Positions 13,799 to 63,778 of a DNA stretch of 64,000 nt are shown one piece after another. Numbering within the stretch: position 1 is the first letter of the stretch; every line of letters starts with the position of its first letter. The stretch covers positions 3,580,038-3,644,037 of the forward strand of contig BFEA01000025.1 of the NCBI GenBank assembly GCA_003427395.1. The letters are read 5' to 3'. This DNA is from Chara braunii (taxonomy: Eukaryota; Plantae; Charophyceae). The position numbers were made by a program, and so were the translations under genes. Under the pieces are notes generated by a model. The model worked only from the letters and a program-made list of their open reading frames with translations, ran no database searches and was not told the DNA's origin.

Positions 13799-13877
13799 GT
13801 CCCTAGGGAAATTCGTTAAAATTGGAACGATACACAGAAGATTAGCATGGCCATTGGCCGCTGCGAAAGATGACACG
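13799..13877 (+). pseudogene. U6 snRNA retrocopy (degenerate), TMEM53 intron 2
   Basis: gtccc...ttaaaattggaacgatacacagaagattagcatggcc...ctgcgaaagatgacacg aligns to the U6 core. Confidence 0.9.
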
Positions 13878-14171
13878 TAAACACATAAAGCCTGACATCA
13901 GGAGTTTGGCAAGGAGCTAATATTAGCACATGCTTGAATGTCAAACCCAGATCAGGAGTTTGGCTGCAGCTGGTTTTCTAAGGAGGTCTAACACACTCCT
14001 TTATTTTGCAAACAAATACATACACGAAGTATACTTTTTTGCGCGAATGCGACCTCGGAAGTATATTCAATTGGCAGCATCTGCCTATCATGTATTCTTG
14101 CTGGCTTAGCTTACCCTGCAGTCTCCCTGAAACCCGTTTTTTTCCCCTAGGTTTTCGTTTTTTTTCCTGGA

Positions 14172-14332
14172 GAAAGGGCGACAGCCTTGAGATATCATCT
14201 TCTCACTGAACAGCCCAAAGTAAATTCAGCATTTGCTCTTCTGAGCTGATTGGGATTCGAACTGAAGGTCCCAATCAGTATATCGTATTTCAACAGTTCA
14301 GGGCTGTACCAACTGAGCTAGGCCTTTTGGTA
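14172..14332 (-). mobile_element. tRNA-derived SINE, family A
   Basis: Minus strand A-box TAGCTCAGTTGG and B-box GTTCGAATCC; tail gatgatatctcaaggctgtcgccc shared with other copies. Confidence 0.8.
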
Positions 14333-15284
14333 CACTCCTCTGAAACATGGAAGTTGCTGTGAAGTTTGGCAGAATCTTCGTGCACAATAGTATTCAGCAG
14401 GACCGGGCCGTAATTGAAATACTTTAATACTCCCTTCGGCACGGTGAATCATTCTGTTAGCACCATCCGTTTGATGAGCGCCTGTTATCGTAATTTTTTT
14501 TATATAATCTGCATGTCCAGGACAATCTACATGAGCATAACGATGTGAAGCTGTTTCGTAGAATCTGCACGGTAAAGCATTCTGCTATGGTTTAGGGTTT
14601 TGTCGGTGAAGTTGAGGTTTGTATTTTCTGCGTCCAGTCGACTTAAAAACTGGGAGCATATATTGCTCCCGTCTGTGTGACACTGTTGAGTAGTGGCTTG
14701 TCTTCTGTTTCACATGTCAAAGCAGCTGCTTTGTTCGTTAGGGGGGATTTAACATTATGGTGGATGGTAGACGAAGGGCGGGGAATGCTTCTAACTAGAG
14801 GCTCTTCATCACTTCTATGAGTTGAAGCGTAGCGTTGCAGAATAGGGATGCAGAGCTGGCGGTCTGTCGTGTTTTGTTGGTAAACTTGAGGCATGTATTT
14901 CCAGCATCCAGCTGACTGAGCTGGCAGCTTTTGTTGTTTCCCTCTGTGTGATGGGCTTGTCTTCTGTTTCACATGTCAAACCAACTGCTTTGTTCATAAG
15001 GATTTAACATTATGGGAATTTAATTAATATTTATGGCAGATGCTACAAGAGGGGTCGGGAACGCTTCAACTAGGGACTCTTCGTCATTTCTATTTGTTCA
15101 AGCTTTTAGCTTTGCAGCATAGTAGTTGAGGGCGCACAATCGTTTGTGAGTTTGTAGAGAGCAAAGGTGCTGCGATGGGAGCTTTTCCTTGCTGGCCGTT
15201 GCTGTTTTCGAAAGTATAATGCTTTTATCCAACCGATTAAATTTAAATGCTAACCTTTTTCCTTTCCTCCTGGACATGATTCAG

Positions 15285-15511
15285 GTTTGGGCATCGGGAT
15301 TTTCAGCGGCTATTCTGAAGAAAAGAAGTGCCAGTACGCTTTCGGAGCAGAACACACCTGCGAAAATTAAGGTTGACTTGGGGGATGGCCTGCAAGCAGA
15401 GATTGATCGCTCAGAGCTCCCAGGAGGGCAGCAGAGCCCTACAGAGGCAGCACTGAAGAAAGTTTTAGAGAAGTTCTTCTCTGTGTTTCTGGAGGTGCCT
15501 ATCATCCGCAG
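15285..15511 (+). CDS. TMEM53/DUF829 exon 3 (VWASGFSAAILKKRS...FLEVPIIR)
   Basis: Pyrimidine tract plus cag| acceptor; DPQ-VWASGFSAA junction is conserved in plant homologues; ag|gtatgg donor. Confidence 0.92.
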
Positions 15512-15693
15512 GTATGGATTTGCTCATGACTTTAACTGAACGAAGCAGTACAAATGTAACTGGACACACATGGTTTGTGGTGTGTGTGTGTGTGTGAGTT
15601 GTGTGCGTGTGTTGTGTGTGTGTGTGTGTGTGTGTGTGTGTGTGTGTGCGTGTGTGTGTGTGTGAAAAAGAAAGCCATATCTGAATAGAATTT

Positions 15694-61608: not shown

Positions 61609-62932
61609 GAGAGAGCTCAAGTACAAAGGGAAGACTGTAGAGAGAGCTCAAGTACAAAGGGATCTGGGTAAGCGTTTGAGTGCGCAACCGAAAACAATTC
61701 CGCTTGGGATCGCTGACCAAACTTGAGAAGATTGCCAAAAAGTCAGCGAGTGGAAAAAGCATTCCCACCAAAAATAAAATAAAAAATGAAGAAAAGCCAC
61801 TCCCAGGAAACCGGAGGTAATGACGGACGTAAAAGCAGAAATGTCTGCTTTTTTCTTGTTAAGGACTTCTGCTTTTTTTTTTCCCCTTAAGAATTTCTCC
61901 TTCGTGTCGGCGAAGGGCAGGGACGTGGGAAAAAGCAGAAATTCTAAAGTGGGGAAAAAAAATCAGAAATTCCTACGTATATGATTATATCCCCGTGAAG
62001 AAAGTTGAAATTTCTAATTATATCATTTATTATATGCAGATTGCGGGTATCACGAGATGGGGAAGCACAGATCCGAATCATTGATGGATCCCCAGTTTTC
62101 TTTTTTTTTAATATAATTTATATGCAGATTGTGCATCCGGGGCGGGTATCACGAGATCCGAATCATTGATGGATGATGGATCCCCAGTTTTTTTTTTTTT
62201 TTTTTTTCCCTGATCCAGAAAGCAGCAGATTGGAAGGGATGGAAACGACTTTTCCTCTTTTCGAGTCGGCGGTCTTCAAAGTTGATTGATGTGGAGTGTA
62301 GGAGAGAATTCCAGGCGGCCTGTAATTCGAGTATGTGTTTTTTGGTGTGATCTGGTGAAGAAGCCATAAATTACCTGTGAAGAAGCCATAAATTACCTGA
62401 TAAATGCATACAAGCTACATTTCCGGCTAGGTACAGCATACAAGTTAGCCTCCGCTTTTTGCTCGTGTTATTGCCTTCTATACGTCGCTTCTCCTCTTGT
62501 AAGATGTAAGTTGCTGTTTTTTTTGTCTTTTTTTTCCCTTTTTTTTTTTTTTTTTTTNTTTTTTTTTTTTTCTTCCTATTTTTTTGTTCTTCTTTCGAGT
62601 TTGTATATGTTTTTCCTCGTCTTTTCTTTTTTCTTTTTCCCCTACTCGTATTTTTTTTTTCGTCTGGTGTCCTGTTCGGATGATCTCCTGACGATTTTTT
62701 TTTTGTAGTTTTTTCCTGGTACTGTGGTCCAATGATGAGCTTTTTCTGTCTTTTTAGTTTTTTCCTGTTACTTTGGTCCGTCATTATGGCTGTATTTGAG
62801 GTAATTTTCAGTCTAGATACAGCGATACTTTGTGTTATCTTGGTGAAGGCGGAAGGCGGTAGGACGATCTACTGTCAGATTCACGGATTGCCTGGCTTGA
62901 TTAGTCCATCACGAAATTGAAAAGTTGCGGTC

Positions 62933-63133
62933 GTCCTTCGGGACATCCGTTAAAATTGGAAAATTCGAACGATACAGATAAGAAGATTGAAATTGGAAAA
63001 TTGGCATGATACAGATAAGGGGGTTAAAACTGGAAAATTGGAACGATGCAGTTAAGAAAGACGAGCAGGGCCAAGGATACGGAGTAGATTACCGATATGC
63101 AGTAGATTAGCATGGCACCCTGTGCAAGGGTGA
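62933..63133 (+). pseudogene. Internally rearranged U6 snRNA retrocopy with A-tail and 13-bp TSD
   Basis: gtccttcgggacatccgttaaaattgg...agattagcatggcaccctgtgcaagggtga; TSD aaaagttgcggtc (62920-62932 / 63173-63185). Confidence 0.92.
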
Positions 63134-63473
63134 TTTTGAAAAAAGAAAAAAAAGGAAAAACAAAAGAGGAGAAAAAGTTGCGGTCATCGTTTTGGGCCAG
63201 TTGTGGGCACTTGTGGCCGACCTAGAGGTAGAGCAAAAGTCATGTTTGGAGATTTGTTCCTTTTTCTATGTCGCGTTCTAACTATTTTTTGAGAAATTTC
63301 CTCTTTTTGAACAACTTCTTTCAACTTACTATTTGTTGATAAATTTCTTCTTTTTTAATAACTAATTTCACATGCAAGTTGATGTAACTAATTTTAAGTT
63401 TTTATTTTTTTGTTCCCGTTATCGTTGTGTGCGTTGTTGATTTGTGATGCGTTCTGGTTTTCCCCTTGTGAAG

Positions 63474-63566
63474 TACATTGTGCGGGGAGGACGGGATCTG
63501 TTCCACTTGCTGTCCAAGGCATTCCAGGGTATCAAGAAGATTGGCGTGATTGGCTGGGGTTCACAG
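63474..63566 (+). CDS. ilvC: KARI exon 2 ([31 protein letters not shown]); gene continues beyond the window
   Basis: aag| acceptor, phase 0; Rossmann-fold IGVIGWGSQ motif; cag|gttagt donor. Confidence 0.96.
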
Positions 63567-63681
63567 GTTAGTAAACGATTCCACAATTTTTTTCACTGTA
63601 TTCTTCAACTACGTCCCAGATCATATGTTGCCAAAAGCACGAAAATTTCATAACTACATGTCGCATAAAGAAAGCAAGAAG

Positions 63682-63778
63682 GTCCTTTGACAAATCTGTT
63701 AAAATTGTAGAGAGAAAGAGAAGATAAGCATTGCTCCTGCGCAAGGATGACACGCAGAAAGTGAGAAATTGCCCGAAG
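63682..63778 (+). pseudogene. Near full-length degenerate U6 snRNA retrocopy, KARI intron 2
   Basis: gtcc..gttaaaattg..agagaagataagcattgctcctgcgcaaggatgacacgca..gagaaat, then an A-rich tract. Confidence 0.88.

Follow-up and report, generated by a model that had tools for sequence, protein, structure and literature searches.

The U6-like pieces found in this Chara braunii window (i.e., the whole stretch of 64,000 nucleotides that was analysed) are dead copies of U6 that were reverse-transcribed and inserted singly, in the manner of LINE. They are probably LINE-type (target-primed) processed pseudogenes of the U6 snRNA of the cell itself. Together with an independent sample, the window suggests that a streptophyte alga carries U6 pseudogenes about hundredfold denser than in mammals. 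Neither a U6 SINE nor a splicing-coupled insertion is supported.

U6-derived DNA was confirmed, with Rfam and with a local profile, at 13799(+), 18319-18412(-), 62933-63136(+) and 63680(+). The four segments of the preliminary description are thus genuine (22.3, 43.3, 48.0 and 58.3 bits with RF00026), and all four lie in introns of two host genes, coding for a DUF829 protein and for KARI, of which the exon models were verified one exon at a time (splice sites, phases, Pfam and KARI matches). The distances of about 100, 340 and 116 nt to an exon, given there for three of them, were judged right (95, 288 and 116 nt measured). The statements that all copies are intronic and that the intergenic stretch has none do not hold: a fifth, decayed copy is intergenic. 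The nhmmer E-values of the five loci range from 8.6e-28 to 3.8e-4.

Table 1. U6 copies and other features of the window (positions are those of the window).
Feature	Positions	Strand	Description	Nearest exon
13799 copy	13799..13907	+	near full-length, decayed; DUF829 intron 2, sense to host	1378 nt
18412 copy	18302..18429	-	5'- and 3'-truncated; DUF829 intron 3, antisense	95 nt upstream of exon 4
62933 copy	62920..63185	+	single composite U6 insertion; KARI intron 1, sense	288 nt upstream of exon 2
63680 copy	63680..63790	+	full-length, mutated; KARI intron 2, sense	116 nt downstream of exon 2
45427 copy	45320..45427	-	fifth copy, intergenic, heavily decayed; overlooked in the preliminary description	
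Host gene 1	3395..18813	+	DUF829 protein, Pfam PF05705	
Assembly gap	16658..16747	.	90 N, inside DUF829 intron 3	
Host gene 2	57064..64000	+	plastid-type ketol-acid reductoisomerase (KARI), 5' part; matches to KARI structures	
Helitron Rep/helicase ORFs	36734..39355	+	PF14214 Helitron_like_N (E 3.9e-44); PF05970 PIF1 (E 8.9e-61)	

The copies differ in their end points and in their divergence, as had been described: they are full length, truncated at both 5' and 3' ends, truncated in 3' at about position 70, or composite. The 18412 copy (RF00026 match 18319-18412(-), 48.0 bits) has a U6 part at 18354-18408, corresponding to about positions 12-67, with the core intact and both ends absent. It is followed by an A-rich tail (18324-18353) and is flanked by a TSD of 21/22 bp (18409-18429 and 18302-18323) with one indel and one mismatch; 0/1000 shuffles were as good. 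The 62933 copy is made of the 5' end of U6 (62933-62962), a 37-bp tandem array at 62950-63058 (2.9 copies of U6 positions ~20-52; TRF period 37) and the middle of U6 up to about position 72 (63090-63136). Its A-rich tail is at 63137-63172 and its TSD is exact over 13 bp (62920-62932 and 63173-63185; 0/1000 shuffles as good). Two nhmmer matches (E 4.4e-11 and 5.4e-7) were obtained for this copy; the RF00026 match at 63090-63164(+), with 22.3 bits, is the 3' part of the composite insert, and a second match has 10.5 bits. The A-rich tail and TSD reported for two copies are those of the 18412 and 62933 copies.

The 63680 copy gives the highest score (RF00026 63680-63782(+), 58.3 bits, E 4e-12); its ACAGAGA region is degraded, its 3' tail is purine-rich and no TSD is significant in the shuffle test. 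The 13799 copy has 43.3 bits and an E-value of 1.5e-7 with RF00026, for a gathering score of 44, and an E-value of 1.9e-21 with nhmmer. It contains a short duplicated stretch within the ISL region and has neither a clear tail nor a significant TSD (shuffle test). A MITE was considered for this locus and rejected: the flanking 12-nt inverted repeat (13786-13797 and 14008-14019) is no better than expected by chance (E 0.1). A scan for sigma-70 promoter and terminator near 13799, which is irrelevant to a eukaryote, gave nothing. In the 45427 copy, the 29 nt at the 5' end are well preserved (26/29 to the U6 5' end; BLAST E 6e-4), nhmmer gives E 3.8e-4 over profile positions 1-69, and the overall identity to the consensus is 59-70%. 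Its tail is purine-rich, with a possible 7-bp TSD that is not significant. The Rfam model run on 45200-45560 makes no U6 call, and the assignment comes from BLAST and nhmmer.

In every copy, U6 invariant positions are mutated or the sequence is truncated. A functional U6 gene was thus rejected for all of them, each being truncated, rearranged or mutated at the ACAGAGA box, the AGC triad, the ISL, the ends or the T-run terminator. The same mutations and truncations count against the idea that the segments are what is left of real U6 genes, or of a U6 cluster, duplicated at the level of DNA. The 13799 and 63680 copies, near full length and devoid of a clear TSD, speak for such an origin. Nevertheless, (i) there is no flank similarity between any two loci, the all-vs-all blastn of the 300-nt flanks of the five loci giving chance-level matches only, and no repeat family covers any copy; (ii) neither promoter motif nor T-run is found at the copies, i.e., the plant USE is absent within one mismatch near every copy (this motif is that of land plants and may not be that of Chara) and no T-run terminator follows any window copy; (iii) two copies carry TSDs and tails. 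An origin by DNA duplication is therefore extremely improbable. The TSDs, the A-rich tails, the differing ends and the unrelated flanks show that the segments are independent copies derived from RNA, as first proposed.

The TSD is significant in 2/5 window copies (1000 shuffles each) and not in the other, more decayed copies. The three copies in question may be old or decayed, which is no proof. The A-rich tails that follow truncated U6 at 18324-18353 and 63137-63172 are ~30-36 nt long; those of the 63680 and 45427 copies are purine-rich. According to the favoured reading, U6 RNA would be copied, wholly or in part, at a nick in T-rich chromosomal DNA by target-primed reverse transcription, presumably with enzymes supplied by a non-LTR (LINE-type) retrotransposon. 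A TSD and a tail rich in A or in purines would remain from each insertion. As the external promoter required by U6 would be missing, the retrocopies would be transcriptionally dead, each decaying at its own pace. The LINE enzyme is inferred, because no LINE or LINE 3' end was found in the window, where the larger ORFs contain no RT or LINE ORF.

It was also considered that the copies form a U6-derived SINE, i.e., that some retrocopies are transcribed and are the source of most others ("copy of a copy"). The very high density of U6 (5 in 63 kb here, 3 in 44.7 kb elsewhere) would fit with it, as would the resemblance between the 63680 and 45427 copies, which have four departures from the consensus in common and tails alike in being purine-rich, and the G at consensus position 66 in both TSD-bearing copies. 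However, no non-U6 body or LINE-like tail is common to any pair of copies, and the copies begin and end at various points in 5' and 3'. When the eight copies of the window and of the independent sample are compared, the pair of copies that has an odd base in common changes from site to site, and most of these bases are transitions; eight is a small sample, in which subfamilies may escape notice. Each copy is closer to the consensus (identity 0.59-0.97) than to most other copies (0.51-0.90), and the divergence is star-like. The GTTAAAATT stretch, rightly noticed to be common to three copies, is not diagnostic: the shared "gttaaaatt" (GTT) variant is the state of the source gene, because it is also present in copies on another Chara braunii scaffold, and its occurrence on different scaffolds fits with the own sequence of that gene. 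Moreover, U6 is transcribed from an upstream promoter, and an internal promoter in U6 is not known in plants or animals (PMC4494074). The U6-based SINE that had been suggested is thus very unlikely. The identical 11-nt purine tail of the 63680 and 45427 copies was rejected as a shared SINE tail since it is of low complexity. The sharing of four odd bases by these two copies, for about one expected, counts against the pseudogene reading.

The location of the copies raises another alternative, namely that insertion or retention is biased to exon-near introns, by a transcription- or splicing-coupled targeting or by capture of U6 at the spliceosome. The 19.1 kb of intron hold 4/5 copies, vs. one in the ~41 kb of other DNA (P 0.037), and for three of the four intronic copies the nearest exon is no more than 300 nt away (P about 0.01; P 0.027 in the sum-of-log-distance test). 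These tests are post hoc, on a window flagged for the same pattern and with n=4-5. Moreover, P goes up to 0.125 without the Helitron, and up to 0.07 without the intron that runs past the end of the window; this intron was dropped because any copy visible there must be exon-proximal. The enrichment in introns and near exons is thus nominal and post hoc only (P 0.01-0.13). Concerning the mechanism, TSDs and tails mean insertion into DNA and not joining at the RNA level; the two best-preserved copies, one of them in antisense orientation within its host gene, bear these TPRT marks, which does not fit with the splicing-coupled capture put forward earlier. LINE endonuclease ordinarily targets T-rich tracts such as those at the 3' ends of introns, and none of the three copies of the independent sample is in an intron of a cellular gene. 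Such a bias is therefore very unlikely, and we consider as slightly less likely still a preference, in Chara, for the insertion or retention of U6 retrocopies near splice sites in introns of expressed genes. If it were true, this preference would mean that sites of co-transcriptional splicing are where the retroposition machinery encounters both U6 and its target DNA.

With LINE-made pseudogenes, the intronic location would result mainly from the introns being old, tolerated and T-rich target DNA, the intergenic DNA being largely Helitron. The large Helitron is free of U6 and occupies much of the intergenic stretch, which weakens the contrast between intron and intergenic DNA. Nevertheless, the spread of the copies is nominally uneven (4/5 in introns, P 0.037), and this counts against the pseudogene reading. 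The motif TGCAG, found directly 5' of two U6 5' ends, was tried as a 3' splice site and rejected: it lies within the TSD in the 18412 copy and is absent in the other six.

The independent sample consists of two loci (L001 and L002) of Chara braunii GCA_003427395.1, i.e., 44.7 kb without N. It contains three further U6 copies (69.9, 61 and 33.6 bits). One of the three, in L001, has a (GA)n tail followed by a TSD of 11 bp (7/500 shuffles as good). The range of the annotated PIF1 "gene" in the sample (22.7 kb non-N) contains no U6 copy. The density is thus ~79 per Mb in the window (5 copies in 63 kb) and 67 per Mb in the sample (3 in 44.7 kb), and is very high in both, as it was for the first four segments. 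By comparison, human has ~0.5 U6 per Mb (1,515 hits) and dog ~1.2 per Mb (2,849 hits) (PMC4476161). If genome-wide counts confirm these values, the U6 copies would (i) serve conveniently to trace LINE activity and to judge how old Chara DNA is and (ii) call for caution in the annotation of snRNA in the Chara genome.

U6 processed pseudogenes are textbook knowledge in mammals; a literature search on Chara and U6 or snRNA retrocopies gave nothing relevant. The U6 pseudogenes made by L1 in mammals are 3'-truncated, poly(A) or chimeric, with TSD (Doucet et al. 2015, PMC4476161). Like them, the Chara copies are flanked by TSD, A-rich-tailed or 3'-truncated, dispersed, probably devoid of promoter and decaying independently. 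They differ in that (i) they belong to a streptophyte alga, at a local density of ~70-80 per Mb; (ii) their tails are purine-rich (A/G, once (GA)n) and not pure poly(A); (iii) no U6/LINE chimera was seen among them. SINEU are SINEs of crocodilians headed by U1 or U2, with a common non-snRNA 3' region and with families and subfamilies (Kojima 2015, PMC4494074). They have in common with the Chara copies an snRNA-derived 5' end on a retroposed unit with tail and TSD; on the contrary, the Chara copies share only U6 and end at different points. The tailless or 3'-truncated snRNA retropseudogenes (Van Arsdell 1981 and Schmitz 2004, cited in PMC4494074) show internal 3' truncation and TSDs. The Chara copies resemble them by their TSDs and their 3' truncation at internal positions, and depart from them in that both truncated copies keep long A-rich tails.

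The contig is not of human origin: its genes are of plant type and it gives its best protein matches with Chara braunii. Concerning the Helitron, no exact product is on record for the PIF1 ORF of the window. In the KARI gene, exon 1 (57064-57420), intron 1 (57421-63473) and exon 2 (63474-63566) are followed by intron 2, from 63567 past the window end. The end of exon 1 corresponds to residues 9-34 of spinach KARI (1qmg) and exon 2 to residues 35-65 of rice KARI (3fr7, E 1.3e-10); exons 1 and 2 therefore abut exactly. In the DUF829 gene, exon 1 ends at 5505 and is followed by exons 11500-11605, 15285-15511 and 18507-18813, with introns 5506-11499, 11606-15284 and 15512-18506. The U6 copy closest to the assembly gap is 1.57 kb away, and both flanking exons are at more than 1.1 kb. 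The order and orientation across it look right, because the codon split at intron 3 is completed (two bases from exon 3, the third from exon 4) and the PF05705 profile is covered in order (2-80 by exon 1, 82-113 by exon 2 and 162-242 by exon 4).

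The U6 copies of the window, named by their 5' start, are listed in the table with the exons of the two host genes. At the gathering cut-off (44 bits) of the Rfam model RF00026, the scan of the whole window gives two U6 matches, i.e., copies 63680 and 18412. Copy 13799 and part of the composite insert 62933 are obtained by E-value reporting; the Rfam match in this insert is its 3' part, and the U6 5' end, which begins at 62933, has alone a score of 10.5 bits. A local U6 profile was made from the window's own copies and run over the 64 kb with all filters off. It recovers the Rfam-reported loci (E 8.6e-28 to 5.4e-7) and adds one site, 45427; no other U6 site is found at E<1 in the 64 kb. 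Rfam makes no U6 call at this site. Its identity to the U6 consensus is 59-70% over its length, and it is read as a fifth, old U6 copy. The four U6-derived segments of the preliminary description are thus confirmed and are indeed intronic, but the copies as a whole are not, since the fifth lies in the 38-kb intergenic stretch said to contain none.

U6 copies, exons of the host genes and other features of the window
Feature	Position	Strand	Evidence or location
Gene 1 exon 1	ends 5505	+	Pfam PF05705 profile positions 2-80, E 6e-18
Gene 1 exon 2	11500-11605	+	PF05705 profile positions 82-113, E 0.0018 taken singly
Gene 1 exon 3	15285-15511	+	no Pfam match singly; splice phases fit
Gene 1 exon 4	18507-18813	+	PF05705 profile positions 162-242, E 9e-22
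Gene 2 exon 1	57064-57420	+	terminal residues align to spinach KARI residues 9-34
Gene 2 exon 2	63474-63566	+	aligns to rice KARI residues 35-65, E 1.3e-10
U6 copy 13799	13799-13907	+	43.3 bits, slightly below cut-off; 1378 nt to nearest exon
U6 copy 18412	18319-18412	-	48.0 bits; 95 nt to nearest exon
U6 copy 62933 (Rfam match)	63090-63164	+	22.3 bits; copy 288 nt from nearest exon
U6 copy 63680	63680-63782	+	58.3 bits; 116 nt to nearest exon
U6 copy 45427	45427-45358	-	local profile, E 3.8e-4; 26/29 BLAST match to U6 5' end, E 6e-4
Assembly gap, 90 N	16658-16747		inside DUF829 intron 3
Large Helitron	25467-42871		Helitron_like_N, PIF1 helicase domains
Helitron Rep/helicase ORFs	36734-39355	+

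Both gene models were checked on individual exons, not on joined proteins. Gene 1 encodes a DUF829 protein, and gene 2 a plastid-type ketol-acid reductoisomerase (KARI); since exon 1 of the latter ends on KARI residue 34 and exon 2 starts on residue 35, the junction is exact. Exon 3 lies 1.1 kb, exon 4 1.76 kb and the nearest U6 copy 1.57 kb away from the 90-N gap. On its two sides codon phase agrees and Pfam coverage continues in order, thus sequence order and orientation across the gap look right. An 844-N gap (1117-1960) is flanked by long (GA)n/(CT)n microsatellites (region 1-2050), and single N's occur at 21397, 23090 and 62558.

Much of the intergenic stretch is Helitron. The best relatives of its helicase ORF are Chara braunii proteins with only 73% and 56% identity, and several long ORFs nearby (e.g., 33690-34994, 37182-38423) match no Pfam family. 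At 24940-24980 there are about 40 G in a row.

The two copies described as having an A-rich tail and a target-site duplication (TSD) do carry both. Copy 18412 has U6 positions ~12-67 with a perfect core, then a 30-nt A-rich tail, and a TSD of 21/22 bp (18409-18429 and 18302-18323); copy 62933 stops near U6 position 72, with a 36-nt A-rich tail and an exact 13-bp TSD (62920-62932 and 63173-63185). Each TSD was equalled by 0/1000 shuffles. In copy 62933, U6 positions ~20-52 form a 37-bp tandem array (62950-63058, 2.9 units, 79% matches). Its units have derived changes in common, which suggests that the array grew in one insert, by post-insertion duplication or repeated template slippage. Copies 63680, 13799 and 45427 are about full length, more decayed and without significant TSD in the shuffle test; 63680 and 45427 end 3' in purine-rich runs. 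No T-run follows any of the window's copies, and none has a USE nearby, though this is a land-plant motif that Chara's U6 promoter may not use, so that its absence counts for less. Close downstream of copy 63680, in KARI intron 2, is a 67-bp tandem repeat of at least 2 units (63830-63990).

These copies fit the classes of L1-made U6 pseudogenes known from mammals (3' truncation, poly(A) tail and TSD; PMC4476161), with a putative LINE as partner, and differ from them in host, density and purine-rich tails. The literature searched yielded no account of Chara U6 retrocopies.

The proposed U6-based SINE is not supported. The 300-nt flanks on either side of the five loci have no similarity above chance, no repeat family covers any of them, and 5' and 3' end points vary from copy to copy. 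Identities are star-like: 0.59-0.97 to the consensus vs. 0.51-0.90 to other copies, the consensus being nearer than most copies. Among eight copies, odd bases in common are mostly transitions and link changing pairs; the four common to 63680 and 45427 (~1 expected) are a weak hint the other way. The 'GTT' ahead of AAAATTGG, a possible diagnostic change, is also present in U6 copies on another Chara scaffold and is best read as Chara U6's own sequence; this U6 position is variable among species. In contrast to the window copies, snRNA-headed SINEs have a common non-snRNA part and form subfamilies (PMC4494074), so that their definition is not matched here.

As regards splicing-coupled capture of U6, placement was tested post hoc, on 4-5 events in a window chosen for this very pattern. 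Under uniform placement, at least 4/5 intronic copies have P 0.037 (0.125 with the Helitron excluded). For at least 3/4 intronic copies <300 nt from an exon, P is ~0.01; for summed log distance to the nearest exon it is 0.027, or 0.07 without the intron that runs past the window's end, in which only exon-proximal copies can be seen. The enrichment is thus nominal at best (P 0.01-0.125), and weaker once the Helitron or the cut intron is left out. On the other side, TSDs and tails indicate insertion into DNA, one copy bearing both (18412) is antisense to its host gene DUF829, and a T-rich intron end is a normal target for a LINE; splicing-coupled capture is therefore regarded as unsupported and unlikely.

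An independent sample was taken from loci of proteins related to the Helitron helicase in GCA_003427395.1 (L001, 51.8 kb; L002, 11.5 kb; together 44.7 kb after N removal). It contains three more U6 copies (69.9, 61 and 33.6 bits), all outside cellular-gene introns; the annotated PIF1 'gene' range, with 22.7 kb of non-N sequence, contains no copy. Two near full-length copies in opposite orientation, 124 nt apart, are located between two annotated transposon genes (L001 43423-43750, scaffold BFEA01000170.1), and one of them ends in its own T-run, with (GA)22 behind it as the tail and then a TSD of 11 bp. The density is 79 per Mb in the window vs. 67 per Mb in this sample. The U6 matches of human (1,515) and dog (2,849) correspond to ~0.5 and ~1.2 per Mb (Doucet et al., Table 2, PMC4476161). 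The present analysis thus contributes: (i) an intergenic copy missed before; (ii) a checked exon map of both host genes; (iii) an explicit enrichment test, nominal at best; (iv) a similar U6 density outside cellular-gene introns in independent Chara sequence.

In DUF829 intron 1, a type III hammerhead ribozyme candidate (6620-6675(-)) has the catalytic core CUGAUGA ... GAAAC and three stems intact, with 40.6 bits vs. a gathering score of 48.5 (3.6 kb searched, E 1.3e-6). A second, weak match is at 9067-9129(+) (19.9 bits), and a 93-nt repeat pair, 94% identical, is near the candidate (6232-6324 / 8854-8946). The region may represent a repeat with hammerheads, retrozyme-like or of another kind. 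Long palindromic hairpins at 61860-61975 and 8580-8804 have weak miRNA-family matches on both strands, far under gathering scores; the hairpins are probably inverted-repeat elements rather than miRNA genes.
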